DNA of 64,000 nucleotides from Zootoca vivipara (lineage: Eukaryota). This document shows positions 4,018 through 49,949 of this stretch, in pieces (position 1 is the first letter of the stretch; every line of letters starts with the position of its first letter). Made by a program: the position numbers and the translations under genes. The notes below the pieces were generated by a model. It ran no database searches. It worked only from the letters and a program-made list of their open reading frames with translations, and was not told the DNA's origin. The stretch lies in the NCBI RefSeq assembly GCF_963506605.1, contig NC_083284.1:24490001-24554000 (forward strand). Reading direction: 5' to 3'.

Positions 4018-4153
4018 CAGGCATCCCCAAACTGCGGCCCTCCAGATGTTTTGGCCTACAACTCCCATGATTCCTAGCTAACAGGACCAGTGCTCAGGGA
4101 TGATGGGAATTGTAGTCCAAAACATCTGGAGGGCCAAAGTTTGGGGATGCCTG
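4018..4153. mobile_element. 136-bp palindromic hAT MITE
   Basis: Same family; TSD agttacag. Confidence 0.9.
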
Positions 4154-8100: not shown

Positions 8101-11100
8101 GGTGGCAGAATAATGTGTCTTGACATGTGAGATGACAATGAAGGAGAAACAATTCCACGGTGCTTCTTCATGCATCACATGGTTAAACTATGGGATTCGG
8201 ATTCATGGGAGGCAGTGATCCATGATCAACCTAGATGGCTTTAAAAGAGGATTGGACAAAGCCATGGAGGTGAAGGCTACTGATGATGGCAGTAATGCTT
8301 CAGAATACCAGTTCCTGGGAAACAGAGCAGTGAAGAGTGCTGTTGCGTTCAAACCTTGCTTGTGTGTTTCCCACAAGCATCTGGTTGGCCACTGTGAGAA
8401 TAGGATGCCAAACTAAATGGGCCATTGGCAAGACCCGGCAGGCTCTTCTTATGTGTGGTGGGATCGGACTCAGCTGATGTAGTCAGCTGAATGCAAATAT
8501 GGTGCTGGCAGCTTAGGCGCCTAACTACATTTTCTCTAGACTTCTGCGCCTCTTGGCTTACTGAATCTAGCAGAGAGGGTTTGACTAGTTGGGTGCAGAG
8601 AATGGTTAATGCAGGCATCCCCAAACTTCGGCCCTTCAGATGTTTTAGAACTACAATTCCCATCTTCCCTGACCACTGGTCCTGTTAGCTAGGGATCATG
8701 GGAGTTGTAGGCCAAAACATCTGGAGGGCTACAGTTTGGGGATGCACGGACGGGTGGTCCCTTCAGCCTTGAAAGAGGCGGTGGTGTCACTACTTATAAG
8801 GAACCAGCTGTGGACCCCTTAGACTGGAATAACTACTGACCAATCACAAATAACCCCTTCCTGGGGAAGGTAGTGGAGAGAGTAGTGGTGGAACAGCTGA
8901 AAACATTCTTGTACAACATAATCCCAATGTGGGTTTGGGCCTGGCCATGTAACTTTTTGTACTAAAGCACCTGCACAAAGCATTTTTGTTTATCAAAGCC
9001 TATCTAGACACAGATGTTGAATGGTTCGATCTTTTTCCTGTTGATTTTAATTATCTTTAAATGTTTAAAATCTTTTTAAACTGTTTTTATTAATATTATC
9101 TGTAAATTGTTTAGCGGTTCTACTACAATCAAGCGGAATATAATTTAATAAATAATAATAATAATAACTGGCCACTGTCTCGGAATGAAGGTTTTCATAT
9201 TTTAGACCTATAGTTCTGAGGCTGCGAAGACTCCTCTTGGGAGACTGAGAGATTTAGTTTTGAATAATCACAACACTTTGTGCCAGGCATCCCCAAACTG
9301 TGGCCCTCCAGATGTTTTGGCCTACAACTCCCATGATTCTTAGCTAAGAGGACCAGTGGTCAGGGATGATGGGAATTGTAGTCCAAAACATCTGGAGGGC
9401 CGAAGTCTGGGGATGTCTGCTTTGTGCTTAGACGAAAACAATAGCCTACTATTTACTTAAACTAGTTGCATATTTACTATTTATATATTACAGTCTCATG
9501 TGAGTGTTTTCATAAATTTAATACAGGTTAATCCAGATGCATTGCCATTTAAGCATCTTTCCTTCTTTTCATCCAAACACAGAAGAAGCTAGTGAGCAGG
9601 ATGAAGTACTTGATAAGAAGATACTTACGTGAACTCCAAAAAGGGGAGAACCACAGCCATTGGGTGGTGAAGGCTTATAGCCATAGCGAGGCAACGGCTT
9701 ATATCCTGTAAAATATAAAGAACTCTGAATACTCCACATGCTTCATTTCCACCTGATTAGATGTTTCAAGGCAAGAGCCCGGGAATAATATTCAACTAGT
9801 ACAGATTTATATAAATTAACTGTTCAATAAAATAACTCAGTATAAGCTGTTATATACACTTGTGTGTTTAGAGACTTTGGCATAAAGAAAATTAATTTAT
9901 TACTACATCTAGATTCTACCTTTCCTCCAAGGATTTCAAAGGGGAGTCCACATTTTATCCTCACAAAAAACCAGTGTGGGTTAGATTGAGATGTGGTGAC
10001 TGACTCAAGTATCATCATGGCTGAGTGAGTAAGTGAATCCTCACCTTCCAGGTCCTAGCCCAACTCTAACCACTACACCATTAGCTTGGAACCATTCTGT
10101 ACTAAGGGAGCAATCCTATGGAGGGCAGCTGAGTGGGGTGGGGAGGGACAGGATGATGGGAGACCTTTCTGGGGGTGGAGAGAGTGTTCTGCTGCTGGAG
10201 GTGTTCCTAGGGCAACAACAGAAAGCTCTGCTGCTCTTACTCGTCCACCATACCCAGACATAGGCTGTTTTATGGGAATTTCAGAGGAGGCTGTGAATCA
10301 TCAGGATCCTAATTCCCCTCATGCGGCCTTCAGGAGATTGCCTAGAAGGGAATGTGACCCTTGAAAATAGCTTTCTTGCGCCTTCAGAAGTAGCATCTCC
10401 TGCACCACAGAATCTCCCTTCCCTTAGGATTATTTAAAAAGATGCATTTCTCAAAACACACAGCATATCTAACAATTTAGGGAAAGGGTATACAACCATA
10501 GTTATGAAGTTATATTTATAAGCAACACCATTTAAAAAGTAGCTTGTTTTCCACATAGCCATCTTCTCATCTCCTTCACCAGAGATAACTAGGGGTAAAC
10601 CTCAATCAAATTGGTTTTAAAAACTGGGCTCCAACTGGTTAACCTGAACTTTCAGCGCTGATGAAGGAAGAATGGATTATTTTACACCATGATTTCCAAT
10701 ACTTCAATCCACAGTTTATCAAAGTGGTGCCTAAACACAGAAGAATGTATTTATAAAAGCTTAGTCTTTCTGTAATATAATCATTTGGCACCATTACAAG
10801 TTAACCTCAGACCTGATAACACTAACTGCAGCTTAAGAAGAACTCTGCTGGATCTGATCAGGCCCATCTAGTCCAGCATCCTAAACAAAGAGAACTTTGA
10901 GGTCATGATAAAACAACCAACAATACTAACGCAGGCTTATTATGTATCCAGGAACCAAGAGAACAATGCATTAATCTTTACAGTCAACGTTTTAAAAGGT
11001 CACTGTTGTTGGCTAGCATCACAAGCGAGATCCTACGGACGCATGTTCAAGTATGCAAAGCTTTAAGATTGAACTGCCATAAGGTTGGCAAATGTATTTT

Positions 11101-12543: not shown

Positions 12544-12868
12544 GCGGGTGGCGCTGTGGGTTAATTCACAGAGCCTAGACTCTAGAGCTTGCCGATCAGA
12601 AGGTCGGCGGTTCGAATCCCCACGACGTGGTGAGCTCCCGTTGCTCGGTCCCAGCTCCTGCCAGCCTAGCACGTCAAAGTGCAAGTAGATAAATACGTAC
12701 CACTCCAATGGGAAGGTAAACGGCGTTTCCGTGTGCTTGCTCTGGTTCGCCAGAAGCGGCTTAGTCATGCTGGCCACATGACCTGGAAGCTGCACGCCGG
12801 CTCCCTCGGCCAGTAAAGCGAGATAAGCACCGCAACCCTAGAGTCGGTCATGACTGGACATTTACTTT
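12544..12868 (+). mobile_element. Sauria SINE
   Basis: gcgggtggcgctgtgggttaa head, B-box ggttcgaatccc, body matching other copies in the window. Confidence 0.85.
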
Positions 12869-13884: not shown

Positions 13885-13964
13885 TTTAACTATGCTTCTA
13901 TGTCTATATTTGAGGTGGTATAGAGCCTATATTGTATAGACCCATGTTGTACTTTGTTTGACAA

Positions 13965-14180
13965 TGGAAAACTGGTAGAATGTGAAGTGAAGATGGAGCC
14001 ATACAGTATCAAGGCCTAAAAGGCCACTTTGTTCTGTATCTTGATGCAAGGCAAGGCCACCTGCCCACCATTCCCATTTGAGAGTTGCCCAAGCCTAACA
14101 GTGCGCAGATGTCAAAACCCAACAGCCCCCCCAATATAAACTCAGCTGCAGTTCATTGTGGTCCTTTCACCTCTAGTGGC
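13965..14180 (-). pseudogene. Decayed orphan copy of the CFI catalytic-His exon plus adjacent intron
   Basis: Minus strand reads ATRGERTTMNCS*VYIGG(frameshift)CWVLTSAHC. It aligns to 18420-18630 and 37370-37580, including intron sequence. In-frame TGA at 14142-14144; donor site lost. Confidence 0.85.
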
Positions 14181-14776
14181 TTCAGCTGCTTTAGCTAGCT
14201 ACATTAAAGGGCTTGAATCATGTTCTGCATTTGCTGGCTTCTGAAGGTTAGAATAATGATAACCTAGTTGAGGAATATTCCCCAGAGCCTTCTTGCTCAT
14301 TGGAGGAGTCTGAAGTCTACTCCTCAGAGTCTGGGTGGTGATGACAGCGTTGTTGTTTAGATACCACCCTTCCATCTGAGGATCACAGGGCAGTTTACAA
14401 TACTTCCCTGGGTTTTAGCAGGTTGGGTGCAGGATCCAAGCATAGGTCCTCCCCTAAAACCAGGCTCTGACTTTTCTTCTGAGCTACTGCTGGGCTGGAT
14501 CACTAAATCTCTGAAGTTTATTGGCCCAAGGCCATGACAGTCTCCATGCATTTTTTTTAAACAATAGGGAAAATAGCACCAAAACAGGACTTCAGAGTTT
14601 TAAGGATTCTGCAACTGTTTGAAATGTTTGAAAATGGTCTATACTATATAGTAAGATACCTGAATATTCTCTGTCCATAGGTATTATGCCATCCTGTGTA
14701 CGGTGGAGCCTGCTTAGCAAATCTCAATACAAAACCCACAATAAAAACAAACATTTCCTTGGTGGTATACATCACT

Positions 14777-14782
14777 TTTATT
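14777..14782 (-). terminator. Candidate polyadenylation signal (AATAAA), CFI copy A
   Basis: AATAAA on the minus strand ~500 nt after the stop; conserved in copy B. Confidence 0.55.
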
Positions 14783-15283
14783 TGAATATACAATGTTTAC
14801 AAAAGAAATGCAGTAACTGTTTACAGAAGCACACATACTTTAAAATTTATTAAATGCTAAATTTCACAACTCATAACTGATGATCTTCTGCAGCATAATC
14901 CAGCCAGAGCGGAACACTTTTAACTTTCACAGATGAGAGATGGGAAATCAATGGCCTTCCACGTGTTAATGGACTACAGATCCCATCATCCCTGACTGCT
15001 GGCCATGCTGGCTGGGGCTAATGGGAACTGGAGCCTGAAACATCTGGAGGGCCAAAGATTCCTCCCCCATCCCTGCCACAGTTTTCAGCAGGCTTAAAGC
15101 TGCAACTGCACACATATTTACTTGGGAGTAAGTTGCGTCTTCTGAGTAAACTTAATCGTGTTGTACATTTCTCTCATTGAAACCACTAGGACAATGCTTC
15201 ACTTTGGCTGGATTGAGCCACAAGTTCTGTAGCCTATCTTTAGTTATTGCCAAGGCAGAAAGAGGTGATATTTACATTCAAAA

Positions 15284-30825
<15,542 letters not shown>

Positions 30826-30894
30826 GGTGAAGAGTGTCTGTCCGTATTTAGAATATTTTCTTTCCCTAAAACTTTTCCCCAGTCTCAGACTTCT

Positions 30895-30940
30895 GCTATG
30901 TGTTTAATTTTTAACCATTAGCAAATATTTATAAAGATGG
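30895..30940 (-). promoter_or_regulatory. CFI-A proximal promoter: HNF1-like and FOXA-like sites
   Basis: gtttaatttttaac resembles GTTAATNATTAAC; gcaaatattt is forkhead-like. Both lie ~80-110 nt upstream of the ATG and are identical in copy B. Confidence 0.5.
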
Positions 30941-32884
30941 TTCCGAAACAACTACGGAGAACATCCATGTGCATGGATGGTTCTCAGCTCTTAGACAAGA
31001 TCCTGCTTAAACCTCAATTCACTGTTCACTGCAAAAATGATAAGAGAAGCAAACAAGTAAAAAGACTGGTAGATCCCTAAAGGAATGTGCTGTCCTGTGC
31101 TGTCCTCTCACACAACTTTCTTAATACTCTCACTTATTTATGTAGCTGCTTTGTATTTGCCTGCTTCTCTGGAACAGAAGAAAATGGATGATTTGCATAT
31201 TTAACTGACAGGGGACTAAGATTTCAAGGTTGTGTTTGGCCAGTTGCTCAATGCCTTGGCAAACGGATAAAAAAAGTATTTGTGCACTAAGCTCTGGGAG
31301 TGCCAGTTTCCGGGAATGGCTAAGCTACTAGCCCTAAAAAAATCAACAAATAGTGGGGCCGTACAGTTCAAAAATCCCTCTATTTAATAAGAGCAAGGGA
31401 AGAAGGTTTGTGTTTTAGTTTTTCTCCTTAGGAACATAGGAAGCTCCCTTATACCGAGTCAGACCATAGGTCCATCTAACTCAGTGTTATCTGCAGCCTG
31501 TAGCAGCAACCTCTTCACATAAGCCTTTCCACCAGGGGCCGCCTCCAAGTTTATGTTACAGTACATAGTTCTTGCTCCCTCCCTTTCAGCTGTACTGATA
31601 CTTGGGGGACCACACCATAAAACAGTTGTAGGGGGAGTGGAGCAACAAATGCTCTTTGTCAGGGCTTTTTTTCAGCTGGGACTCACCGGAACTGAGTTCC
31701 TGCACCTGAGGGCGGGCACCGTTGCCATTATAAGAGAACAAGGTTCATGGTGAGTTCCGGCACCTCTTTTTCTGGAAAAAAAAACACTGAGCACCTTAAG
31801 ACATGCAAGAAAACGGGTTACCTCCAGGAATTTTGAAATGGGTTTAGTGACCCTGGAAGTCTGCATCTCTACATTCTGTAACTTCTCCTGCTGTACGCCA
31901 ATAGCTATTTGGAAAGAACATTTCTGTTTTGGCCATGCCTGCTTAGAAATAAGCACCACTCAGTTCAGTAGGGATTAATCTCAAATCAGGGTGCAGAAGA
32001 CTGTGGGATTTGTGTGATTACAATACAAATATTTCTTTCACTTTAAAACACAGCTGATTTCTCAGTAATTCTTGTCACTGATGATTAGGAAACAAGGAAG
32101 TAAACAGAAAATTAGCCCTACAGGTATTTCCCACACTTTGCCTGATTTAGGCTAGTAATATATGCGACTTTTCTATTGGTTCTGTGCAACAAATTCCCAG
32201 TAATCAAATGCAGAGTCAATGAAGCTTCTTAATAACTAGCATTCAAAACACTAGTTTGGAAACAATTTCTGCATGTAAAATTTTGAATGTAAAATTCAAA
32301 ATGAAGTGATAAGGTATGTTAAGGCTTCCTTATGGAAGTATCTAAAGGTATAGATTCAAAGGTATAGATTTAAAGGTAAAGGTAAAGGTAAGGAAGCCTG
32401 CAGCTGCAATAGACATTCTAATTCTGCTTACTGTTATAATAATTTGATTTATTATATGATTACATAAGGAAAGACCATAAGATTGAGGAAAAATTCAATA
32501 ATAATAAAGAAATTCTGGAACGTGATTCATCAGATGTTTTGGACTACGACTCTCATCAGCCCCAACCAGCTGTAATCAGGGATACAGACATATATTTTGT
32601 CCACAGATGTTGAAGTTTATTGGCCCAAGGCCATGACATCATCCATGCATTTCATTTGAACAATAGGGAAAATAGCACCTAAACAGGACTTCAGAGTTTA
32701 AAGGATTCTGCAACTGTTTGAAATGAAAATTTATAGCAGTGGGATTCTAGGCTGTACAGTAAGATACCTGAATATTCTCTGTCCATAGGTATTATGCCAT
32801 TTTGTGCACGGTGGAGCCTGCTTAGCAAATCTCAATACAATACCCAAAATAAAAACAAACATTTTCTTGGTGGTATACATCACT

Positions 32885-32890
32885 TTTATT
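32885..32890 (-). terminator. Candidate polyadenylation signal (AATAAA), CFI copy B
   Basis: Paralogous to 14777-14782. Confidence 0.55.
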
Positions 32891-33396
32891 TGAATATACA
32901 AGGAGTACAAACGAAATGCAGTAACTGTTTACAGAAGAACACATACTTCAAAATTTATTAAATGCTAAATTTCACAACTCATAACTGATGATCTTTTGCA
33001 GCATAATCCAGCCAGAGCGGAGCACTTTTAACTTTCACAGGTGAGAGATGGGAAATCAATGGCCTTCCACGTTTTAATGGACTACAAATCCCATCATCCC
33101 TGACTGCTGGCCATGCTGGCTGGGGCTAATGGGAACTGGAGCCTGAAACATCTGGAGGGCCAAAGGTTCCTTCCCCATCCCTGCCACAGTTTTCAGCAAG
33201 CTTAAAGCTGCAACTGCACACATATTTACTTGGGAGTAAGTTACGCCTTCTGAGTAAACATAATCATGCTGTACATTTCTCTCATTGAAACCACTAGGAC
33301 AATGCTTCACTTTGGCTGGATTGAGTCACAAGTTCTGCAGCCTATCTTCAGTTATTGCCGAGGCAGAAAAAAAAGAAATATTTACATTCCAAATCA

Positions 33397-36300
33397 CTAG
33401 TTATATCGCGAAATGAGATTCAGTCCAGTGTGATAGCCAATCCAACTGAAATAATGTGCCACTTTTGTATAAATCCCAGGGCGTCCTTTTTCACCACAAG
33501 TTTCCCTCCAGCTCACAACACCCCAAACATACCCCACATTATTAGAGTCAAAACAAACTAAGGGTCCTCCTGAGTCACCTTTACAGGAATCCACAGAGCC
33601 ATCATGCGTACCTGAACAGAGAAAAACCAAGTACAGTAAGTTGTTGAATGCATATTTTAATGGCAAGGATGCTACAGGTACCCTCACCCACAACAAAGGG
33701 AATTGTGGGTGCAGTTTCATTCCCAAACTATATTATTGATACTGGATACAGTCATAATAGAGTAGAAAGGCTGATCCTTGTCAAAGACTGACATAATTAT
33801 TCAGTGAACTGGTGTTATTCTGGATATTATCTTTAAATGCTGGTGATTTAGGGAGCAATCCAAACTCCTGCTAGTCCAGTGGAGTCACGTGGGGCAATGA
33901 GGCCATGGCTGCATCCACAGCCCTGCCATGCATGACAACCAAGGCAGAAAGGAGAAGGCAGATAAACATCCCCTCTTCCTGTTAACTTGTTAATAGTCAT
34001 GTGGGGAGCTATTTGTGTGTTTGTTTTGTCTCAGGCAATGATATGTGTTGACCTGTCTCTGCTTACTTAATACTGGCTCACAGGGCCGGCGCGTCCATTT
34101 AGGTAAACTAGGCAGCTGCCTAGGGCGCCAAAATGGAGGGTTCCCCCCCTGAGAATTTACCCCGGCGCAGGCAGGTCACTGTGGAGCCGCGCGACCAGAT
34201 CGCCTCGCGCTCTCGCTCGCTCCCCCGCTGCCACTCCTCTTCCCTCCGCCCACCCCGCCTCGCTCCGGCAGCAGCACGCAGCCTCCTCCCGCCGCGAGGA
34301 CCGCCCCCTCCACAAAGAAGGGAAGCACCGCGCGCTCGCACGCCAAGACACCGATGGAGAGAGAGGCTTTGTTCAGTGTTCCAACGTTGGCCGTTTCCAA
34401 CGTCCCCTTTGTTCAGAGGGTTTGTTCAGTGTTCCAACGTGGGCCGTTTCCGGCGTCACAGCGACCCCCTTCCCCGCCCCACCCTGCACAAAAAGAGGCT
34501 TCCGCTATAACAAGATCGGGGTAAATTCTGGTAAAAAATCCAGCAAAGGCGTTGCTAATCACCATCAGTAACAACAGTTCCATGTCATTTGGCAACCGTC
34601 CAAAGGGAGATTCCAAGCAGGGGCAAATTTAGAAATGATTTAATTATTTATTAAATTTGTATACCGCCCTATCTACTATACCTGTAGCTCTCAGAGCCGT
34701 TCACAACAGAAAATTACAATATACACAGAATACACAATGAAAATAAAAACAAGGACATGAAATGATTACATATGCTTTTGTTATGGGAATATCACACCCT
34801 TCAAATAAGTTGGTAAGCAGCAATTCTCTTGGATTCAACACTTTCCAGCTCCCCACCCCACAGTAAATATCATAGTAACCTAATGTATGATACTGAGTCA
34901 GACCATTGGTCTATCTACCACAGCATTCTAGTGTTTCCCAAAACTGGGTCACCAATTGTTTTTGGACTACAATTCCCATCATTCCTGACCACTTGTCCTG
35001 CTAGCTAGGGAACATGTGAGTTGTAGTCAAAAAAACAGCTGCCAACTCAAGACAGCCGCAGTGGAGGCGGCCTCAGGCTTGCGCTCCCCGTGTGAAGCTC
35101 CAGAGGCGCGCGAGCCTGGGGCTGCCTCCTCTGCGCCTGTCACTGTTGAGCGGCTTCAGGCCGCTATCCCGAGGCGCGTGCGTGCCTCTGGAGAGCAGGC
35201 TGAAGCCGCTCAACAGCTGACAGCCACAGTGGAGCCGGCCCCAGGCTCGCGCTCCCCGCGTGAAGCTCCGGAGGCGCGCGGGGGGCGCAAGCCTGGGGCC
35301 ACTTCGCTGCGCCTCTCAGCTGTTTTTTATTTTTATTTTATTTTTTCTATTTTCAATTTTTTCTATTTTCTATTTTTATTTATTATTTATTATATTTTTT
35401 AGAAGGTGATCTCACCTAGGGCGCAAAAAACCCTAGCACCGGCCCTGCTGGCTCATTAGTTTGCGTCCAGATGGGTGTCAAAAATGATAAGAGTTCATAT
35501 TCACCCGCACATTCCATGCCTTCAAAGTACCGGTTCCCGTAGATTTCAGAACAGTTTTCCATTAGATAAATGTAGCCCCACTTAAGGCCAAATTGCTTTT
35601 CAAACTCTAAAGAAGAAATAAATAACAGTTGGTGTTTCATTTTACCATTTATTAATTGTTCACACTTCAATACCGTACTTTCATTCACCGTCTATAAACT
35701 TATCCCATTTCAACCATGGTCGGGTTAATCTGATTTCCAAACCAGTTAGCAACAGTTATCTCCAAAGAGCTCACGCTGTAGTAGCTGAAACTTGAAGAGA
35801 CTCCCGAATCCACCTGCGGATTCCGTCCCTGAGAATTTCACAGGTGCTTTCTTTCCCCTTTGAGAATTTTAGAATGTAATTTCTTTTCTCATGACTTGAT
35901 GCAGGATGGTGGGGGAGGAGGAAGAAGGGGGTGAGATGTTCAGCTGAGACCAATAGGAAATGCTAGTGACACAGCTTTTAATGAGCTGTTATATAGAAGA
36001 GTTGAAAGGAAGTGCTTTTGTAGCTTAGCAAAGTATGAGGCCAGAAGAGATGAGGAAATTGTAACCATAATTCAAAGAAGTAATTAGCCTATTCCATTTA
36101 CCTTCATTGAGTCCCCAGCCGGACACTTTGCACTGGTGGCCACCTTTGAACATGTATTTTGACCAAGGGACACAGACTGGCACAGAGTCATGCGAGGAAC
36201 ATGTTGATTGGTTCTTGTCCCTGGGTTTCATCTCCAGCAAAGCAATGTCATTTTCATATGTTTTGGGGTTGTAATTCTCGTGAACTATTACTTTAACTAC

Positions 36301-39300
36301 TTGAAATACTTCTATTATACCATACTGTACTGCTGTGTTCAGCAGTCCAATCCATACCGTATAAGTATTTGCACGGTTCTCTCTGCAAAGAAGAAATGTG
36401 TTTCAAAGAGTGCAAGCAGAAACACAAACTTTGGATTATGAAACATTTTCCAGCTACAGTACTGAATCAAGTAGTCAAATGGATTATATACACAAGCACC
36501 CACTTTCAGCAATAGACTCCTGCACAGTTTTCCACGCCTTTATGAAATCCATTAGATTAAATCCATTAGATGAGAAAAGCTGAGATTCGTCTGAGATACA
36601 GCAAAAATAGCTGAGGCCTGGCTACAAATTTATTTATTTATTATTGCATTCATTTTAATATTTATTTAATCAAAACTTAATTATTTGCATTTCGGGGGGG
36701 GGGGAATCCATGGAAAATGAGACAATCAAACTGTTAAAAAAGCACAATAAAACGACATGCCAGCTGGAACAAGAAACTCTTCAGTCATGAACCTGAAGTT
36801 CAACAGAGAGTGTATCTCTTTAATTACAGTTGTGAGGGAGTTCAACAGTTTAGAGAAGGGCTCAGCAACCTTTCTCAGCCGTGGGCCAGTCCAATGTCCC
36901 CCAGACCATGTGGTGGGCTGGACTATATTTTGGAGGAGAAAAATGAGCAAATTCCTATGCCCCACAAATAACCCAGAGATGTATTTTAAATAAAAGCACA
37001 CATTCTACTCATGTAAAAACACCAGGCAGGTCCCACAAATAACCCAGAGATGCATTTTAAATAAAAGGAAATATTCTACTCATGTAAAAACACACTGATT
37101 CCCGGGACATCCACGGGCCAGATTGAGAAGGCGATTGGGCCGCATCTGGCCCATGGGCCGTAGGTTGCCTACCCCTGGTCTAGAGTTCACTTCTACTAGA
37201 TATTAGCAATGTGTTTGAGCCATGGGGGACCACCAACAGCGATTCCCCCAAAGATCTCAAACAATTTTTTAAAAAACTATAAGGGACCAGTTAAGTATTT
37301 TCTTTTATTTACTTGATGGGGGGGGCTGTCCCTCCTGCCCCCCCCACTACACCCATGTCAATTAAGCCAATATAGAACTGCTAGACAGTTGTAACATAGA
37401 TGGAGCCGTAGACGTCCAAGACCCTAAAAGTTCCTTTTGTTCTGTCTCTTGCTGCAAGGCAATTCCCACTTGAGAGTCGCCAAATCCACTTACCTAACAC
37501 AGTGTGCAGCCGTCAAAACCCAGCAGCCCCCAATATAAACGCCACTGCACTTCACTTCTGTCCCTTCCCCTTTAATGGCCACGTGCCAAGGAAATTCATC
37601 CTGCAAATACATGAGGCATGATGTTACACTTTTCTAGACCAGTTCTCCTACTAATATTACTTATGTCTATGTATGGGACGCGGGTGGCGCTGTGGGTTAA
37701 ACCATAGAGCCTAGGGCTTGCCGATCAGAAGGTCAGCGGTTCGGATCCCTGCCACGGGGTGAGCTCCCGTTGCTCGGTCCCAGCTCCTGCCAACCTAGCA
37801 GTTCGAAAGCACCTCAAAGTGCAAGTAGATAAAAAGGTACCACTACAGCGGGAAGTAAACGGCGTTTCCGTGTGCTGCTCTGGTTCGCCAGAAGCGGCTT
37901 TGTCATGCTGGCCACATGAGCTGGAAGCTGTACCCTTGGTCAATAACGCGAGATGAGTGCCGCAACCCCAGAGTTGTTCACGACTGGATCTAATGGTCAG
38001 GGTTCCCTTTACCTTTACCTATGTATGTGGTCACCGGATGGAACTGCAAGTAGGAGCAAAAATCAAGGTTGACAAAGTATGGTAGATATTTATTTCAGAC
38101 CCTACTGTTTCTACTCTACCTTCTTCAGGAAAAGTCAGAGAAACAAAGGTTCAGCATTTTGATGTGCTGCCTCTTCTTTTCCTGTTGGATAAAGAAATAG
38201 CTCCTTCGTCCATTCCACTTTTTGGGTTCCTACTTCTAGTTGGATTTTTAAAAATAATATTTGATGTACTAAAATGTCCTATAGAAAAAAAAATCTACCA
38301 TAGGCCCTTAACTGGAGTGTTTCACTGATTTCAACTGTGCTGCCGATTCAGATTCCCTAGCTCATGACTAGAGGGAGGGAAGGTTGAGGAGGAGGAAAGG
38401 GGGGGTATTGCTTGGCAATATTGTAAAAGACTGAAAATTAACTCTTTGCTTTCCTACTTATACTGTACTCAAAAAGCTTATGCTTTGCCATAGATTTCTA
38501 GGTTTTATCCATTGTCACCATTCCTGCAGGTCTAAAAAATGCATTAAAAGCACAGACTTGACATTACAGACACAACATTATAGTAGCTGTATTGTTACCG
38601 GTAGCTATGGCTGATTTTCCTTTTACCTTTCTTGCAGTGAATCCACCTGCGATTCGCTTCTGACGAGTAACAGTGTGGTTTGCAATGCCGCACTGTAATT
38701 GAGGTAACAATGTTTTGATCTTTCTTCTTTCTTTAATAAAAGAGATAAGCAGTGTCATGCTTACAACTCGTTCCCTTGCATTTGTTGAAATAAACTGCTT
38801 TGTGGTTTGATTTTTTAAAATGGCTTTTAAAGCCCTCTTTGGGCATTTAGTTTACATACGTGCATTGACGATAATGGAACGAAGGAGAGTTGGGTGCACT
38901 GGCAAATCCCACCTCCTCCAGCACATCACAGTCCCTGTCCTTCCAGTCCTTCACAGGATGGAGTGTCAACTTCTGAACTGGGGACCTCTTGTGGAGGCCG
39001 GCTGTGCAATCTAGAACCCCCACATATTAGGGATAATTGCTTGCAAAATGCACATTTTATAAGAAGTGCATTCAAAAATGTTATACCTACTTTAATGTAT
39101 TTTATTTTTCCTTTAAAAAATAATAATCACAAACTATTGCAGAAATTGGGTGTACTGAAGATTGAAAAAATGAGAAACCAAAACTGGCAGATTCAATTAA
39201 CCCTAACACTTATACAATAATTCATTTTAAGCACATATCCTCCAACATCCTGGGGACCAAAACAGAGGTGCTTATTTCTGGTCTCGTGACTCGCGCCAGA

Positions 39301-42300
39301 GTGCCAGACCAAAAAATGGGGCATTCCAGGATCCAATCAGAAGTCAGGATTGGCTGTTGTAATTCTGGGATATCCCACTTAAATCAGGACTGTTGAGCAA
39401 ATGTAAGCAGCTTTTTAAAAGGTTTCCTTTCAGGGAGTTGATGCGTGGCACTTTCCTGAGAAAAGAATCAAGACTCATGGGTTTCAAGGCCAGCTCTTTC
39501 CTTTGATGGTTGTTTTCAAAGGTGGAAAGGGGTTTGTTAAGCAACATACTCCTGTGTAGCCTTGAAGGCTTCATCCTCCGTTCATATATTCATGTGCTTT
39601 ACACAGCTGTTCACGTGAGCAGCTTCCAGTACCTTTCTGACAGCACACTGTCAAAAGTGCCCCGGAAGAGGTGATAAACCAACATGGTGAAAATCATTGG
39701 AAGCTCAGGAGAAAGCATGATTTGACACAAGCAGCTTCCCCATGGAGTAGTTTCCAATTTGCAAGAGCGATTAGTGAATGCATGTAATAAGTTCCATTGA
39801 GCAAAGCAGACTTCACTTATGAGTAAGCATGCATAGGACTGGACTGCTGAATCAGTCCAAGCAACTGTCATATTGTCTATTGATGATGATGATATAGTGT
39901 ATTTACCTTCATCCATAGACTGTTCAGCGTCTTCTGTTCCTTCTGAAATAAAATAAGAGTGTACAACTACATTAAATTATTGTAACTGAAAATCTAGTTT
40001 CAGATCCATGAACCTATGAACATTCCTGCAGCTGAGCCTTCACAGCTCTTTGATCTATAGCAATTAGCAAGTGATAGTGTTTATTTTCATGCTGCAAAGA
40101 ACTTAGTGATGTCCAGGAAATAATATTAAAACACAAAATGTTACCTCTTGCATTTGGTTCAGCTCTCCTATTGCGTATTTAAAACATACACAGACACACA
40201 TATATAAAAATGTAAAATGTCCATGTTTGTGTGCGATGACTTTTCTCCGAAACAGCTAGACCGATTGTGTTCAAATTTTGACACAACGTTCCATTCCAAT
40301 ATGCGAGTGTTTGCATAGCCTTAGATTTATACAGACATCACACCTGTCACAGGTAAAAACATGATATAGCGCCTTCCAGTGGTCGGCAAAGGAACAGACG
40401 CCATATCTTTTTGCGTAGCAATAGCGCCATCTGTTGGACGTCAAAGGAAAGGATCCTATAGAACATTCTATGGGGGGGGGGGGAAACAACATTTCCAGAC
40501 TCCCACCCCCTCCTCATCCTCCTCCACCTACCTCACCATTCCACAACCATAGCCGCCGGTGGGAGAGGGAGGATGGCAGGTAGCCCGGGAGTCAGGAAGG
40601 GCCTCACCGCTGCTCACCTCCAACCACCCGCAGACGTAGCCTCCACCGCTGCCACCGACACCGGGACACTCAGGCCAGGCCACGAGAGACAAGTCGGGCC
40701 CCACCGCCGCTGCCTCCGCCTCCGCCACCGCCTCTGTCACCAACGCCTCGAGAGGCAGGCCAGGCCTCCCCATGAGAGGCAGGCCGAGCCCCAAAGCCAC
40801 CGCCCCAGCCACCGTTGTGAGAGGCAGGCCAGGCCTCTCCGCAAGAGTCAAACTAGACCCCACTTCTGCCTCCGACGCCTACACTGGGAGACTCAGGCCG
40901 GACCGCAAGAGCCAGGCTGGGCCCCACACCCACCGCTGCATTCGCCGCCGATGTCGCGAGAGCCCGGTCAGGCCTCGCTGCAAGAGGTAGGCTGGGCCCC
41001 AAACTCAACGCCTCATCCACTGCTGACGTTGTAAGACGCAGGCCAGTCCTTGCTTCTCCTCGCCCCCATCACCGGGCAGAGAGGAAGGCTGGTAGGCAGG
41101 CTGGGCCTCACCTACCCTCACCTCCACCGCTCCTCACCTCCCATGCCGACACCACGAGAGCCACAGCAACGCATGGCCGGGTACAGCTAGTATTATATAC
41201 AGTATAAGTAGGATGTACACAGAAAAAAAAACATACATCAACGCACACTATGCTATGAATTAGACTGGATTGCTGGATATTGGTGTTTGAGAATCTAAAT
41301 GTTGGACGTCCAATAATGCCTGCATCATACTTGACCATTGGCTATGCTAAGATACCCTTCCATGTTTAGCCTTGCAGGGGTGAAGTTCTTGAAGAGTTCA
41401 GAGGAAGAAATTGCTTTGTTCAGCTGGGAAGCCAAATAATATTTTGGGGTAGATCACCCTGTACAACTTAAATCGCATTTTCTTATATGCATGAGTAATT
41501 AGCATGGAGTTGCAGAGTCTGTTCTTGCAGAGTTGCAATTTGTAAGTTGCCAATTGCCATTGTCCTCTCATTGTGGGACTAAGGCTGATTGCAGAGAGCA
41601 ACTCGGAAGCCTTCTTCACCTTGGTAGACAAGAGCAGCCTCTCCCAACCTTGGGTTTCCAGGTGTTGTTAAACTACAACTCTCATCAGCCCCAGCCAGCA
41701 TGGCCCAATGGTCAAGGATGACGAGCATTGTAGTCCAACAACATTTGAGGACCCAAGTTTGGGAATAGGACAGAGGAACATGTAAATGGGCTGATCACAA
41801 AATTTGCAAGCAATAATATGTACATTTTTTTCTTCTGACTCATTGGTTACATTGTTCTTTTTTCAAATAGTTTCAAAGTGTGCATTTATTTATTTGCTCT
41901 GTATAACTGTGGTTCCATGAATGGGCTGCAAATTAGAGACTGGTTTTTTCCTGAGCTATTCCTGCCCAATAAGCTGACCTATAAAAAGCAGGACACTCCT
42001 GAGAGAACCCAGAGAGAAACATAAGAATAGAGTTATAAAATAATATATATATATGAAAATTACCCGAATGTTCATTTCCTTCAGCTCTTTTTTTATCACC
42101 TATTTAAAACATGCACATATACATAAAATAAGTAAGGTGAACACATAAAAAACCAATCCACCAACAAACAATGAACTAGACTGACTTCCATTATATTAAG
42201 GGTCTGTAGTCCTGCAGATATTGTTAAACTCCACCTCTAAACTGGAAGGATTGTGGGGAGTGGTTCAAAACTACATATGAACCTTGCTCAGTAATACAGA

Positions 42301-45300
42301 TGACGAAGGGCCAAAGTAGACATTGGGAATCCCTATTAGCTTTCCTCTTAGGGCTAATAGCAGTTGTGCTGATGGGGTGATTTCTTTCTCTTTGTGCCTC
42401 TCTTGCTATTAATTTTTCTAGCATCATGTTTAATATGGACCTAGGCTCCATTCACTCATTTTGCTCTGCAGGGTGAAGTGACGTGACAAGTGTGATATAT
42501 AGACCAAACACACGCTCACTTTTTGATGAACTTTAAATGAAATTGTTAATAGTTGGATGGGTAGTGCTGCATTGCAGTGATAGTATAACTTCTATTGTGT
42601 TTTATATAGATATAGATACGTACACACTTTTCTACCATGATACCCAAGGTGGTTTACATTTCTTTAAAAATGTGATTAAATTACAATTCATTACGATTAT
42701 CACATTATTATGATTATGTCCTATTGCTGTGGACTGCTTTGTGCACAATGTGGAAAATGCAGAATATTGAACAGGGATGATTGCCTTCATTGAGAAAATA
42801 CATAGATATACTTGCAAACGGCTTCTGCTTCTATTATGAGAATGAGAAGGGTTTGGTTTTCCAATAGTATAAATCAACCTGGGAAGGTGACATGTGCTTT
42901 TAGAAACAAAATAAAAAAGTTCCTTCCAGTAGCACCTAAGAGACCAACTAAGTTTGTTATTGGTATGAGCTTTCGTGTGCACATGATGTGTTTTTAGCTT
43001 ACTGTTAATTTTAATTATGTTTTGAACCTTTTAAAATACCTGTTTTCAGCTGCCTTTTATTGACAACACCGCTATTAATGTTTTTTGGGTTTTTTTGTAA
43101 ATTGTTTAGGGGTTCTTTTTACAATCGAAAGGTATATATTTTTGTTAAATAAACAGAAAGCATTCCCTTTATGAGCCCCATTGAAATGAATGCTGCTCGT
43201 TTTCTTGAGCTGTTCTCTGTGTTTTTAGCTACAACAACCTCTTTGGATGGGGCAAGCTGTATGCCTACGATGAACAAAAATACAGCTGCAAATCATATAT
43301 CAGTAAGTGGAGCTCAAACCTCAAATCAAGTAAGCTATTAGGCTGCAATTGTTGTACTGTGAGTTGTGCGGGAGCACTGTTTAGGTTTTGATATTGCTTC
43401 TCTGGGTTAAACCTCAGAGCCTAGGGCTTGCTGATCAGAATCACCGCGACGGGGCGAGCTCCTGTTGCTCGGTCCCAGCTCCTGCCAACTTAGCAGTTTG
43501 AAAGCACGTCAAAGTGCAAGTAGATACAGGGGAAGGTAAACAGCATTTCCAAGTGCTGCTCTGGTTCACCAGAAGCGGCTTTGTCATGCTGGCCACATGA
43601 CCTGGAAGCTGTACGCCAGCTCCATCGGCCAATAAAGCGAGATGAGCGCCACAACCCCAGAGTCGGTCACGACTGGCCCTAATGATCAGGGGTCCCTTTA
43701 CCTTTACCTTTTAGACTGTTCTAAGCTTATCCAAACCTATTACATAGCCGGGGGGATTATTGTTTGAATGCAGCCACAAATAAATGGAAAGTATACTCTT
43801 ACACTCTTGGCGAGTCTCATCTTCTCCTGTTAAACAGTCCACTTCGTTGTCACAGACGTATTTTCTTGGAATACACACATCTGAATGACAGTGGAAGTTT
43901 CCCCCCCTGCATGCTATCAGAAAGAGATCAGTCAGAATATAAAACACAAAATGGTCCATAAGTAGCACAGTGGTTTAAGGCCTAAGCACAAAGAATTGTA
44001 GAGTTGGAAGGGACCATGAGGGTCATCTAGTCCAACCCCCTGCAATGTGGGAATCTTTTTGCACAACCCTGAGATTAAGAGTCTCATGCTCTATCGTTTG
44101 AACTATTCAGTTATTTTTTTATAATTAAGCAATGTAACTTTGAAATATTCTACATTCTTTTTGGAACCGACAGCTTTCCTGCTCCTTTGTGTGTATAAAG
44201 TTGAATGCAATTATTTCTCTTTTTGGGAGCAATGAAAACACCCCCACCCCACCCCATATGTTCATGGTTACTGTTACTGTTTTTAGTTCTGATCCATTGA
44301 TTTTGATTGGTGAAGCTTATGTTTGCTTTGTTCTGAGTTTTGAGTTAAAGTTGGTATATAAATCTGAGAAATATGACTTGAATATTTTAACCTTTTGTTT
44401 ACAAGCATTTTTTGACAAGCACATAGCTTTAAAGTAGCTTTCAGAGGCTTTTGTTTATGTGACTGATAATACACGAAAACAAGAATGATTACATAGCATA
44501 GAACATACCTTTGCAGCATACTTCATCACTTAAGTCTCCACAGTCGTTGACGCCATTGCATGTCTTACCGGAAGGGATGCATTTTCTATTGACACAACGG
44601 AATTCTCTTGGGGAACATTCTGTCAAGTGGGATGAGAAACAAATAATGTTTTGGTTAGATATTCTGCAGCAGAAAAAGAAATATATAACTCCATAGGTTT
44701 GTTTTCTGGGATGGGTGCACTGTAGCTGAAGGCATGAAACTATTGTGTTCAGCATAACTGTCTGTCTCTGGTTTAATTATTAAGAACATTTCTATGTTTC
44801 CTTTTCATCAGTGACAAATCCAAGAAAGCAAACAAAATCCAACACAGCAAACAAAAAGATGAATTCATCATAGCATTCACAAGGATTTTTTTAACCAAAA
44901 AAAAAAAAATCAGAAGGAGAGATTTAAAACTGTATGTTGTGGGGAGGGGAACAGGCCCTGGCTGGCCCTGGGGGGGCGGTCACTTTGAAAGTTGAGTGGG
45001 GCCTGTTTACCCGACTTCATTCAGGACTCATGATGATTATCATTTACAGTAGTCATTTTCCTTGCAGCAGTGTCCCAAAGCAACTAACATTAAATCCAGC
45101 TAAAACAAACACAACCAGTAAGAACCTAAAAACACAGCAGCACGTCTTCAGGTAGCCCAATTGACTATGAACACTGACTGCGTTGTTTCAAAGAATCCAC
45201 AGTGTAGTTTGACTAAATATGCAGCAACAGAAGCAGTAATTAAGAGGCATCCTTTCTATCATATTGACTGAGTGACTGCATTTATGCAATGCCTTTCTGC

Positions 45301-47833
45301 CAAGGCTCCCAAGCTGGTTTACTTTTTTTTAAAGTAGAGCATGAGGCTATTTCAGGGTTGCGGGTTCTAGCCCCACATTGGGCAAAAGATTCCTGCATTT
45401 CAGGGGGTTGGACTAGATGACCCTCGTGGTCCCTCTTATGGTTCTAAGATTCTATTCTATGAAATGGTAGAAGATATAAAGCAAAAGTGTCCTGCCATTC
45501 CAAAAGTCTCTTCTTGGCCTGGTGGTATAAGATCCCTGGCCTGGGCCTTGTTGCCTCAGGGTACACTAGTTTTTCTTAAGCCACCCCAGGGAAAGTGAGA
45601 GAGGGACTGCACCAACATGTCATTTACAGGCAGATACTAACACTGTAATGAACTCAGGTGCTGAGTTACAACAGCTCTGTATCCACAAGAGCGATATCAA
45701 CACGCTAAAACCCTGTGACATGTTCAGTGACTACAGAATGTTGAGTTATCTCTTCCAAGGGGAGTTAATGCCAGTGGAGGGTGAGGAGAGGAGGAATGGA
45801 ATGGAATGGAGTCTCCTGTAAGAGGGCATGGCTAGCACATTGAAGAGGAATATTTCATATTGCAGTATTTTGTTCCAAGTTGGAGAATTTGATTATCAAG
45901 CCAGAAATGGCTAACTACAGACAATTCCCCCCACCCACCCACAAAAACTTCTTTTACCAACCTCTATGTGTTGTATGGCACACCACTTTTGCCACTTTCT
46001 CCTTAGTTTTATTCACTCTAGTTAAAGTACATTCTGCTAGGCTGGTCTCTATTCCTCTGCATCTTGCCTTAAGGCATTCCAATGAATTGGAGTCTTCTTC
46101 TGGGTCAACAGTGTCTGTACGATCAGCCCCTCTGAGCAATGCAAGAAAGAAGAAGAGAAGTAATCATTGGCCCTTTGTTACTTTTGGAATATAAAATGCA
46201 TTCTCTATAACATGGTTTGCTAGAAAACTAACATGTGTTATATATTAAAAGTACCGTTTATTCAGACAATAAGTGTGTGTGTGTGTGTGTGTGTAGCTAC
46301 TGAACTGTAAGGAGCCTAGCCTCTCTTTGGTTTTGCCAGTTTATGGGGAGCAGCCAAAAACACCTCAAGACAGAAAAGACAACAGCAGGCTAGATGGGCA
46401 AATAATATGACCTTCCAGAAGGTTCAGTAGTGTTCAGTAGTGCTCCGTGGACTCAAGAAAGGTCTTCCCAAGCGCTGCTACTTCAAAGGGTACCTACCTC
46501 AAACTGCATACGGTACTCTTGAGTACCCCCTGAATAAAAAGCACTGGCTGTATGAACTATGGCCCTGACCTCGTAATCCACAGATGGAAATTAGAACCCT
46601 CTCAGGTGTTGTTAGACCCTCAGCTCCTGTCACATACTAAAACCCTCCCTTGCACCCAGATGAGACCCTTGCATGGGGAAGAACACAGGCATGATGGGAG
46701 TTTGAGTCCAAGAACACCTGCAGGGCCACAGATTCCCCATCCCTGCTCAAATCCATCATAAAGATGGATGCCACGAATTCAGAGTTTTTCTTAAGATTTA
46801 TTTAAGTAACATTTTATCCATATAAGCAGCTCTCCATTCCACCCCAGAATCTTACTCTGGAAAACCAAGATGTCTGCAGGCCACATTTGCTTCATTCATA
46901 CCCCAATGAAATCCACACACAGGTGTCTTTGGGGATTGATTCACTTCCACTTGGATAATTCCTGTTGATGTTGCATTTTCAGGCTTCAACGAAACTTGAA
47001 AAGTCTCTAGAAAGCAAAGCAAAATCTGCTCATGTTTAGGTCGGTAAGGTTTACAAAAGACAGCAATGTGGACAAAACCCACTTTGTTGTATGCAAGGCG
47101 CCATGTGCATAGTTCTGTTGGCGTTGTTTGTCTGAAGGGTGGAGTTAAAATAAGTGAAAAGATAAATTAACCTTGAATGGGAAGACAGGTACAGTATTAT
47201 TTAATCAAATGCCACATTCTTTGTCAATTTGCTTCCTCTCTGGGATGCCAGATTTGAATTTCTACAACAATTCACACAAATGCATACCAGGAAATAGCTG
47301 GATGTTTTATATAGATACAAAAAGCACAGGGTTTTTCCCCCAATTACAGGGCATTGTTTATACACTTCTTCTTACCTTGAGAGCTGCATCTTCCTCTGTA
47401 CATAAATCTGCTCTTTTTACGCTGACATTCCAAGCTCTTTAGCTGGCAGTAATTTAAAGTCCTCTTCTCTGTAGAACAAACCAAGGTTCCCTTTCTTGGG
47501 CATTGGTAAGGTAGCTTACAGATACAGGAGCCATCCACACACCTCTGCCATGGCGGGCAAAACACTTTCTCGCAAGACTTCTGTGTGTATCCATTGTTTA
47601 CACATTCTTCTATCAGATATGTATCGTCCTAAAAACAAATACTATTCAGTAACAGAAGTTGATTTGTTGTTTTCACACTTCCTTCAGATCCATGCAAGCC
47701 TTAAAGTATTACCAAAAAAATGTGTTTCTTACAATGCCAACCATTTTTTAAAAGAAATAAAAATCCTTACCTTTTGTTGAAAAATTCCAAGTGGTAAGCA
47801 CAAAATAAACACGAGAGCTGATAATGATTTCAT
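33397..47833 (-). CDS. CFI: Complement factor I-like, copy B (diverged paralogue), ~579 aa if the 30-nt micro-exon is skipped
   Basis: Exons 47833-47771, 47628-47376, 47006-46856, 46131-45962, 44619-44509, 43913-43803, 42099-42064, [40174-40145 acceptor mutated], 39942-39907, 38730-38627, 37600-37494, 36382-36102, 35606-35505, 33611-33397. No internal stop or frameshift; triad intact; TAG one codon earlier than copy A. Confidence 0.9.
34081..35447. mobile_element. Non-autonomous hAT element, CFI-B specific
   Basis: TIR cagggccgg...ccggccctg; perfect 8-bp TSD ctggctca; GC-rich subterminal repeats. Confidence 0.9.
36856..37177. mobile_element. hAT MITE, CFI-B specific
   Basis: Ends aggg..agcaacct / aggttgcctacccctg; TSD gt(t/c)tagag; internal ~70-bp direct repeat; absent in copy A. 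Confidence 0.75.
37676..38018 (+). mobile_element. Full-length Sauria SINE, CFI-B specific
   Basis: gggacgcgggtggcgctgtggg head, (ccttta)n tail, TSD ctatgtatg. Confidence 0.88.
40195..41190 (+). mobile_element. Non-autonomous Helitron-like element, CFI-B specific
   Basis: AT-rich start tatataaaaatgtaaaatgtcc; 3' hairpin gccacagcaacgcatggc followed by gggtacagCTAG|T; no TSD; absent at ~20170. Confidence 0.7.
43403..43711 (+). mobile_element. Sauria SINE, CFI-B specific
   Basis: Sauria body with (ccttta)n tail; absent from copy A. Confidence 0.85.
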
Positions 47834-47902
47834 GGTGAAGAGTGTCTGTCCGTATTTAGAATATTTTCTTTCCCTAAAACTTTTCCCCAGTCTCAGACTT
47901 CT

Positions 47903-47948
47903 GCTATGTGTTTAATTTTTAACCATTAGCAAATATTTATAAAGATGG
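47903..47948 (-). promoter_or_regulatory. CFI-B proximal promoter: HNF1-like and FOXA-like sites
   Basis: Same motifs as the copy A promoter. Confidence 0.5.
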
Positions 47949-49949
47949 TTCTGAAACAACTACGGAGAACATCCATGTGCATGGATGGTTCTCAGCTCTT
48001 AGACAAGATCCTGCTTAAACCTCAGTTCACTGTTCACTGCAAAAATGATAAGAGAAGCAAACAAGTAAAAAGACTGGTAGATCCCTGAAGGGATGTGCTG
48101 TCCTGTGCTGTCCTCTCACACAACTTTCTTAATACTCTCACTTATTTATGTAGCTGCTTTTTATTGGCATGCTATTCTGGAGCAGAAGAGAATGGATGAT
48201 TTGCATATTTAACTGACAGGGGATTAAGATTTCAAGGTTGTGTTTGGCCAGTTGCTCAATGCCTTGCCAAAGGGTAAAAAAGGTATTTGTGCACTAAGCT
48301 CTGGGAGTGCCAGTTTCTGGGAATGGCTAAGCAACTAGCCCAAAAAAATAAACGAATAGTGGGGCAGTTCAAAAAAGAAGGTTTGTGTTTTAATTTTTCT
48401 CCTTAGGAACATAGGAAGCTCCCTTATACCGAGTCAGACCATAGGTCCATCTAACTCAGTGTTGTCTGCAGCCTGTAGCAGCAACCTCTTCACATAAGCC
48501 TTTCCACCAGGGGCCGCCTCCAACTTTATGGTACAGTACATAGTTCTTGCCCCCTCCCTTTCAGCTGTACTGATACTTGGGGGACCACACCATAAAACAG
48601 TTGTAGGGGGAGTGGAGCAACAAATGCTCTGTGTCAGGGCTTTTTTTCAGCTGGGACTCACCGGAACTGAGTTCCTGCACCTGAGGGCGGGCACCGTTGC
48701 CATTATAAGAGAACAAGGTTCATGGTGAGTTCCGGCACCTCTTTTTCTGGAAAAAAACACTGAGCACCTTAAGACATGCAAGAAAACGGGTTACCTCCAG
48801 GAATTTTGAAATGGGTTTAGTGACCCTGGAAGTCTGCATCTCTACATTCTGTAACTTCTCCTGCTGTACGCCAATAGCTATTTGGAAAGAACATTTCTGT
48901 TTTGGCCATGCCTGCTTAGAAATAAGCACCACTCAGTTCAGTAGGGATTAATCTCAAATCAGGGTGCAGAAGACTGTGGGCTTTGTGTGATTACAATACA
49001 AATATTTCTTTCACTTTAAAAACACAGCTGATTTCTCAGTAATTCTTATCACTGATGATTAGGAAACAAGGAAGTAAACAGAAAATTCGCCCTACAGGTA
49101 TTTCCCGCACTTTGCCTGATTTAGACTAGTAATGTATGCGACTCATAAAAACTTTTCTATTGTTTCCGTCCAAAAAATTCCCAGCAATCAAATGCAGTCA
49201 GGTAAGCTTCTTAATAACTAGCATTCAAAACACTAGTTTGGAAATAATTTTCGCATGTAAAATTCAAAATAAAGCGAATAGGTATGTTCAGATATTTCCA
49301 TAACAATGCCCGCAGCTACAATAGACATTCTTATTCTTACTGTTATAATAATTTATTTTCTTCTTCTTATTATTAAGGATTTTCTTGATTTACAAAGCTA
49401 TACAATGCAATGTCTCTCGTAACATTTTTGCAAATCAGTTTCATTTGTTGAGACATTGGGAAGAAAGGGGAAAAGATATAGATGGGGGAGAGATGGGTGG
49501 GGGTGGGTGATTTGATTTATTTTATGATACATAAGGAAACACCAAACGATTGAGGAAAAAATAGAAAAAGTTTTTTTCTCTGGAACCTGATTCATTAGAT
49601 GTTTGTGACTACGATTCTCATCAGCCCCAACCGGGGATACAGACATACATTTTGTCCACAGCAGTTGACAAAAAGATTCACTTTGGAAGTTTCGCTTAAA
49701 TTTTCGGAGGGGTAGCAAGTGTCCCACCGGTGTGGCAGCACAAACTTATTGCGACACCATCTTCCATCAGGTGCATGCAAACTACACAGCAATGTGGAAA
49801 CAAGCGAATTACGAAAACAGACACGGTGTTCATTTTTTTAGCAATATGATTTATTACAAGTTGCGGCTTCTGCTGCAGCCAGTGACATCCGAACTGTGCT
49901 AAATGCCGCAAATTTATAAAATGCTGCAATTTTCTCTGTGTGTGTGTGT

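Follow-up and report, generated by a model that had tools for sequence, protein, structure and literature searches.

The window analysed here, a stretch of 64,000 nucleotides (nt) of the Zootoca vivipara contig NC_083284.1 (assembly GCF_963506605.1, positions 24,490,001-24,554,000), carries two copies of the complement factor I gene (CFI) in tandem on the minus strand, hereafter termed copy A and copy B. Comparison of the window with itself by blastn delineated a tandem duplication of about 18 kb, with aligned blocks that are 90-97% identical. The exon model established for copy A is identical to XP_034967715.1 ('complement factor I isoform X1', 590 amino acids), and the model of copy B becomes identical to XP_060134483.1 ('complement factor I-like isoform X1', 579 amino acids) when its 30-nt exon 8 is left out. 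Both genes, CFI and CFI-like, have RefSeq annotations already; the acceleration of copy B, which is localised and lineage-specific, is new, and so is its recurrence across squamates. In exons 11 and 12 (e11 and e12), which carry His57 and Asp102 of the protease domain, amino acids have been replaced faster than synonymous sites, the adjoining introns and the non-coding sequence of the whole duplicated unit have diverged. Coordinates within the window are collected in Table 1.

Both proteins (P0382 for copy A, P0373 for copy B) matched Pfam families PF21286, PF21287, PF00530, PF00057 (in two stretches) and PF00089, and the domain order FIMAC/Kazal, SRCR, two LDLa and trypsin-like protease was found in each of them. 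Copy B retains the signal peptide, the furin site, the catalytic triad (His57, Asp102 and Ser195), Asp189 and every cysteine. An earlier interpretation of this DNA, made from the letters alone and referred to below as the sequence-only reading, had held that all cysteines and the triad are kept, and indeed not a single Cys codon differs between the copies. The TAAHC and NDIAL motifs are present in both, and the furin site RQKR is followed by IVGG in copy A and by IAGG in copy B. When the Protein Data Bank (PDB) was searched exon by exon, the top match of every protease exon was factor I, the first matches of the last exon being human and bovine complement factor I. The strand at the S1 entrance reads SWGENCG in copy A and SWRETCG in copy B, which departs from the canonical strand; copy B is thus a CFI paralogue by descent that lies off the canonical active-site frame.

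The 1,770-nt reading frame of copy B displays no frameshift, no premature stop and no insertion or deletion (indel) relative to copy A, and the exon lengths of the two copies are equal. Splice dinucleotides are canonical at 25 of 26 positions, the exception being the acceptor of the optional in-frame micro-exon e8, which encodes 10 residues. This micro-exon is missing from all six RefSeq isoforms of copy B and is also skipped in copy A isoforms X2 (P0374, 580 amino acids) and, together with exon 6, X4 (P0286). At the indel rate of the intron alignment (87 small indels in 11,117 aligned sites), about 5.4 frameshifting indels would be expected on the B lineage per 1,770 nt, and the observed number is zero (P about 0.004 under neutrality). 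The neutral chance of acquiring no new stop is 0.16, and the absence of both indels and stops has a joint P of about 7e-4. Furthermore, B-derived changes in the protease domain fall on sites that are invariant among 22 canonical squamate CFIs in 5 of 23 cases, against a baseline of 42% (p=0.046), and variable positions are preferred (p=0.014). Since the coding sequence (CDS) has acquired neither indels nor stops and its changes avoid invariant sites, copy B is not a neutrally decaying pseudogene and decay is unlikely, in line with the opinion expressed in the sequence-only reading. Judged by its sequence, it is a lineage-specific tandem CFI duplicate and still an intact secreted-protease gene.

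Exact codon counts between copies A and B returned 6 replaced codons and 1 purely silent codon in e11, with one additional silent third-position change inside the D366G codon, and 15 replaced codons (18 nt changes) and no silent codon in e12, precisely the figures given in the sequence-only reading. For the light chain (from I347), where it had proposed about 32 replacements and 6 silent changes, 32 replaced and 7 silent codons were counted; its estimate of about 12 and 6 for the heavy chain was essentially right, the count being 13 and 9, or 12 and 7 without micro-exon e8. These raw counts overstate the excess because non-synonymous sites outnumber synonymous sites by about 3.7 to 1. With the NG86 method, the ratio of non-synonymous to synonymous divergence (dN/dS, omega) was 1.25 for the light chain (binomial p=0.37), 0.44 for the heavy chain and 0.82 for the whole gene. 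Pairwise maximum likelihood (ML; GY94, F3x4) gave 1.59 for the light chain (p=0.25 against omega of 1), 0.57 for the heavy chain, 0.54 for e13 and e14 together and 0.93 for the whole gene, and e11+e12 alone reached 7.8 (GY94, likelihood ratio test against 1, p=0.0056). Under a shared-clock model, in which a single neutral time and a single kappa were imposed on the whole gene, omega was 2.19 in e11+e12 versus 0.61 elsewhere (heterogeneity p=1.1e-5; omega above 1, p=0.016). The replacement excess is therefore local and not domain-wide, significance being reached only in e11+e12. The claim of a strong excess across the protease domain stands for these two exons and fails for the light chain as a whole (1.25-1.6, not significant). 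As contrary evidence, the sequence-only reading had named a dN/dS that is not above 1 and is uniform: uniformity is rejected and e11+e12 lie above 1, while the whole domain is not significantly above 1.

Copies A and B are equal in age, so that their introns can be used to gauge neutral divergence. Non-coding sequence differs at 414 of 9,666 well-aligned columns (4.3%; transition/transversion ratio 1.34), a yardstick matched by the synonymous sites of the whole CDS (divergence 0.046). It amounts to about 2% neutral divergence per lineage since the duplication. Heavy-chain dN (0.018) lies below the intron value (p=4e-4) and light-chain dN (0.067) above it (p=0.01), and in e11+e12 dN is 0.084 versus an intron divergence of 0.043, about double (p=0.0015). 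The differences in these exons gather in two hot patches (Table 1), which together display 20 differences over 114 nt (17.5%), all but 0.5 change being non-synonymous. The four adjoining 150-nt intron flanks contain 16 differences over 507 nt (3.2%; patches versus flanks, Fisher p=2.4e-7). When the CDS was scanned for such clusters, the scan statistic had P=6.5e-4 with neutral divergence taken as uniform, and P=5e-5 against permutations of the observed differences. We also considered that the whole e11-e12 neighbourhood might be older or hyper-mutable, and rejected this in view of the low divergence of the immediate intron flanks. Intron 11 as a whole is 7.9% divergent, largely through misalignment at homopolymers and indels. 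Large recent conversion tracts between A and B were not apparent, the longest identical run (259 nt) being only mildly above expectation.

In order to polarise the replacements, three Podarcis proteins and a Lacerta agilis protein were used as outgroups. In the light chain 21 replacements are derived in B and 5 in A, 3 positions changed in both copies and 1 is ambiguous; in the heavy chain the corresponding figures are 9 and 3, with 1 more. About three quarters of the replacements thus fall on copy B. At sites 370, 399 and 488 both copies left the ancestral residue, in different directions. The ML protein tree groups A and B as sisters (SH-aLRT 99) within the lacertids, with terminal branches of 0.07 for B and 0.019 for A, and after the duplication the replacement rate of copy B was 3 to 4 times that of copy A. 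If the neutral divergence is assumed to be split equally between the lineages, dN of e11+e12 on the B lineage is by arithmetic about 3 times the neutral rate. The segments containing the patches are the most conserved part of CFI between the single-copy genes of Podarcis and Lacerta (1 difference in 45 and 1 in 39) and the most divergent part between A and B (8 in 45 and 12 in 39). Within the protease, the B replacements concentrate in the N-terminal half (37-, 60- and 70-80 loops) and at the S1 entrance.

In serine proteases, the 37-loop and the 70-80 loop jointly build an exosite-I-like face that adjoins the cleft on its prime side. Hot patch 1 corresponds to the 37-loop next to Cys42 and hot patch 2 extends from the 60-loop to the 70-80 loop, so the placement of the changes on loops flanking the catalytic His, as the sequence-only reading had it, is supported. 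The Pasteurella multocida protein PmSLP-1 binds the factor I (FI) light chain through W411, W417, L418, F422, V426 and Y499; factor H (FH) binds the same region, and PmSLP-1 binding is host-specific, for ruminant factor I (PMC12080921). The mapping onto an FI structure suggested by the sequence-only reading was carried out by exon-wise alignment to bovine FI (9B3H), the residue numbers of PMC12080921 being equal to chain positions. The six bovine contacts align, in the order given, with Zootoca residues 401, 407, 409, 413, 416 and 490. Hot patch 2 aligns with bovine FI 403-426 and thereby covers W411, W417, L418, F422 and V426; residue 416, the counterpart of V426, changed from Ala to Val on the B lineage, and the S487E and T488K changes of exon 13 adjoin F490, the counterpart of Y499. 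The changed residues thus interleave with those that contact PmSLP-1 and FH, which fits selection on the cofactor-contact surface. Such selection had been proposed in the sequence-only reading; the proposal is partly supported, for e11-e12, where dN exceeds both dS and the introns, it does not hold for the light chain overall, and the signal is specific to copy B (21 versus 5 replacements). The PmSLP-1 system resembles ours in that the segment following His57 forms the light-chain face bound by a pathogen, and since both a pathogen protein and FH bind there, selection on this face is plausible. It differs in being a mammalian system.

The second group of changes lies at the S1 entrance. Gly216 is required in serine proteases for access of the P1 residue and for backbone pairing with P3, and in complement factor D Arg218 blocks Asp189 through a salt bridge within a self-inhibitory loop (214-218). 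By analogy, Arg216 of copy B could shift specificity or, like the Arg218-Asp189 lock of factor D, keep the enzyme inactive until a partner is bound. Both proteins have a basic residue in the 214-219 strand of a complement protease that would need a substrate-cofactor complex. They differ in the position of the arginine (218 in factor D, 216 in copy B), and the reach of Arg216 to Asp189 is a conjecture. Compared with vertebrate factor I (human 2XRC and 5O32, bovine 9B3H; family S1), copy B shares the architecture, the furin-cleaved linker, the triad, Asp189 and the cysteines. It differs by an Arg in place of the otherwise invariant Gly216, by N219T, H224R, V227I, Q30H and G43S, by the rebuilt 37-loop and 70-80 loop, and by the lack of the 10-residue micro-exon and of the N67 sequon.

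Table 1. Positions within the window of the two CFI copies, of the copy B exons and accelerated segments, and of further elements.
Feature	Position	Strand	Description	Basis
Copy A unit, 'complement factor I'	14512..32613	-	14 exons, ATG 30825, stop 15284-15286	self-blastn and exon model
Copy B unit, 'complement factor I-like'	32611..49668	-	14 exons, ATG 47833, stop 33397-33399	self-blastn and exon model
B exon 10	38627..38730	-	end of linker, furin site RQKR, new N-terminus IAGG (V348A, G354R)	exon model
B exon 11, His57 exon	37494..37600	-	copy A counterpart 18543-18649	codon comparison
B exon 12, Asp102 exon	36102..36382	-	copy A counterpart 17517-17797	codon comparison
B exon 13	35505..35606	-	S487E and T488K; 4 silent changes, omega 0.2	
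B exon 14, Ser195 exon	33397..33611	-	stop TAG (33397-33399) one codon before the stop of copy A, where copy A reads TTG; protein one residue shorter	
B micro-exon e8, 30 nt	40145..40176	-	acceptor AG>AC at 40175-40176	
Hot patch 1	37547..37588	-	codons 361-374; Q30H, 37-loop, N41K, G43S; 7 differences in 42 nt	numbering anchored on the FPWQ, C42 and AAHC motifs
Hot patch 2	36307..36378	-	codons 393-416, 60-loop to 70-80 loop; 13 differences in 72 nt, all non-synonymous	
S1-entrance segment	33472..33507	-	G216R 33505-33507, N219T 33499-33501, H224R 33481-33483, V227I 33472-33474	numbering from the S214-W215-G216 and P225-G226-V227 motifs
His-exon relic	13960-14240	-	about 70% identical to e11 of both copies; in-frame stop, donor region deleted	
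Small duplicated exon	31731-31769 and 48706-48744	-	acceptor ...tttccag followed by AAAAAGAG; encodes EKEVPELTMNLVLL and a stop	
Insertion in copy A intron 5	23160-25593		2.4 kb, not in copy B; only short tandem repeats found; at 24-26 kb, where it lies, G strongly exceeds C (skew 0.32)	
Insertion in copy B intron 13	34073-35448		about 1.4 kb, specific to copy B; GC-rich, long spurious open reading frames	
Repeat family of about 140 nt	1131-1272, 4013-4154, 8611-8745, 9284-9421		weaker copies in addition	
Second repeat family, about 320-350 nt	12544-12858, 15849-16202, 37674-38020, 43405-43713, 62241-62581			

CFI duplicated independently in Hemicordylus, Erythrolamprus, pleurodont iguanians, booid and pythonid snakes, and Zootoca; the sister relationship of A and B (SH-aLRT 99) sets the origin of the Zootoca duplicate apart from those of the other squamates. 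Residues 554 (Gly216), 556 (Asn219) and 565 (Val227) are invariant in the 22 canonical squamate CFIs, and SWGENCG is likewise unchanged in turtle, alligator and bird sequences. We compared six divergent lineages, namely Zootoca B, Hemicordylus CFI-like, Erythrolamprus like-2, Thamnophis, Varanus and a Gekko kuhli model, some of these proteins being unverified gene models. Among them Gly216 was replaced by Arg four times and by Asp once, Asn219 by Thr twice, by Arg twice and by Gly once, and Val227 by Ile three times and by Leu once, while Asn41 was lost five times. The changed sites of the divergent lineages overlap about 2.3 times more than expected under uniformity, and those of canonical sisters about 1.9 times, so that the overlap as such is mostly site heterogeneity and only the invariant positions 216, 219 and 227 stand out. 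The duplicates of Hemicordylus capensis, Erythrolamprus reginae, Thamnophis elegans and T. sirtalis, as well as the Varanus and Gekko kuhli proteins, resemble copy B in having the same sites changed and the e12a region as their most divergent segment, and differ in that their divergence is older and spread across the whole protein. The divergent squamate proteins entering this recurrence are P0275, P0291, P0293, P0018, P0289 and P0307. The protein collection searched contained no B-like proteins derived from transcripts and, from other lacertids, no B-like protease domains; in the library of papers searched, none dealt with squamate CFI duplication or selection. It is conceivable, although we regard it as rather unlikely, that CFI was repeatedly duplicated in squamates with one copy driven each time to the same alternative active-site state (Arg216, Thr or Arg219, Ile or Leu227, loss of Asn41) and to a rebuilt cofactor exosite; these copies would form an undescribed functional class of factor-I-like proteases with changed specificity or self-inhibition, and copy B of Zootoca would be its youngest and best-dated member.

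Regarding expression and gene models, the signs that copy B is transcribed are indirect and weak. Besides the six RefSeq isoforms, two small runs, only guessed to be RNA, contained 13-16% of the sampled words of the window; as a yardstick, B exonic words represent 12.4% of the window, and 4.4% would be expected if A mRNA alone were present. RefSeq 'CFI-like isoform X5' ends in the small exon at 31731-31769, about 0.9 kb upstream of the copy A ATG. Since the X5 model runs from B exon 13 past the last B exon into the spacer, it represents a B-to-A read-through transcript model. The older RefSeq CFI-like models P0384, P0370 and P0371 combine A-type exons 3-5 with B-type exons from exon 10 onward, P0384 having a B-type exon 6 in addition; this mixture may stem from a haplotype with a gene-conversion tract, or from an earlier assembly in which the two copies had been connected in another way. 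Both repeat families listed in Table 1 are dispersed in both orientations, also within the CFI introns, and are probably SINE-like (short interspersed nuclear element) or other transposable elements.

The interpretation that we favour, and to which we give somewhat better than an even chance, is that copy B is a maintained paralogue whose cofactor- or substrate-docking face and S1 entrance would have been reshaped by positive selection after the duplication; from the sequence comparisons, such selection on copy B is likely, not proven. It has to be weighed against relaxed constraint on a redundant young duplicate, in which copy B would drift to loss of function and the e11-e12 cluster would have arisen by chance in a gene whose omega is about 1, an explanation that we hold to be possible and yet doubtful. 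Several points indeed speak against positive selection. Neither the whole gene nor the light chain has an omega significantly different from 1, the dN of the heavy chain on the B lineage cannot be distinguished from neutral, and five residues that are invariant in the 22 squamate CFIs are altered in B (Q30H, G43S, G216R, N219T and V227I). The N-glycosylation sequon NGT has become KGT at B codon 67 (47426-47428), where Asn is invariant across all CFIs compared, and the e8 acceptor is lost. The invariant-residue hits and both losses also fit relaxed constraint, as do the omega values, the heavy-chain dN and the stop that comes one codon early; G216R could equally mean the loss of normal catalysis. 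Moreover, the e11+e12 partition was picked after the data had been seen, the light chain contains only 8 synonymous changes, which leaves tests based on local dS weak in power, and the comparison involves two sequences with protein-only outgroups, so that synonymous changes are unpolarised. Non-coding 45-nt windows with a similar mismatch density exist as well, those inspected (in intron 11) adjoining indels or homopolymers. Relaxed constraint alone, however, cannot raise dN in e11+e12 above the neutral rate, and the strong heterogeneity of omega along the gene, the absence of indels and stops from the CDS, the avoidance of invariant sites by B-derived changes and the renewed change of the same rare sites in other lineages all argue against it.

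Copy B might also have been under selection without being any longer an Arg-specific protease, as an impaired or self-inhibited decoy or a competitor for cofactors or for pathogen proteins that bind FI, which we consider improbable. G216R sits at the S1 entrance although Asp189 and the triad remain, and both the established role of Gly216 and the Arg218 block of factor D are compatible with such a state. Both the AAHC and the GDSGGP motif are missing from older CFI-like paralogues of Anolis, Phrynosoma, Candoia and Liasis, indicating that non-catalytic CFI paralogues do persist. In addition, a bacterial protein does bind this face of FI (PMC12080921). Copy B has nevertheless kept the triad, GDSGGP, the furin site and the Ile16 N-terminus through all of its neutral divergence, and the decoy would be a sub-case of the favoured interpretation and not its opposite. 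A local process other than selection is very improbable, whether a third, divergent CFI paralogue acted as donor in a gene conversion, mutations arose in a clustered burst, or the duplicates were misassembled. A relic of a His exon in the window shares two B states, Gly366 and Ser374, and the mixture of A-type and B-type exons in the older RefSeq models could point in the same direction. An imported or hyper-mutated tract should, however, have brought synonymous and intronic differences, which are raised neither in the patches (0.5 synonymous change) nor in their flanks. No relic-specific bases are found in B between the two shared sites and no contiguous tract is shared with copy B, so that gene conversion from the relic was rejected. 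As for misassembly, the A and B models match current RefSeq proteins, and a divergence of 4.3% with many indels far exceeds allelic variation.

If positive selection did act, directional selection would have retuned the surface by which copy B docks the cofactor-substrate complex, and Arg216 would probably have altered P1 specificity or activation behaviour as well. Copy A would keep the ancestral role, the cofactor-dependent cleavage of C3b and C4b, and copy B would work with a different partner, substrate or regulatory mode; from its sequence, it has probably acquired an altered immune function. Between an arms race and neofunctionalisation the data do not discriminate. Factor I is in mammals a conserved, single-copy brake on complement whose loss causes disease. 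In Z. vivipara there is a young extra copy, datable by its own introns, with changes largely on the cofactor face and at the S1 entrance. This confinement of the changes, together with the intron dating, makes the locus a natural experiment on how FI recognises its cofactor and substrate and on how an immune protease may gain a role. The recurrent sites (41, 216, 219, 224, 227 and the 70-80 loop) provide a short mutagenesis list for any FI, and these observations suggest that complement regulation in reptiles may be more elaborate than the mammalian model.

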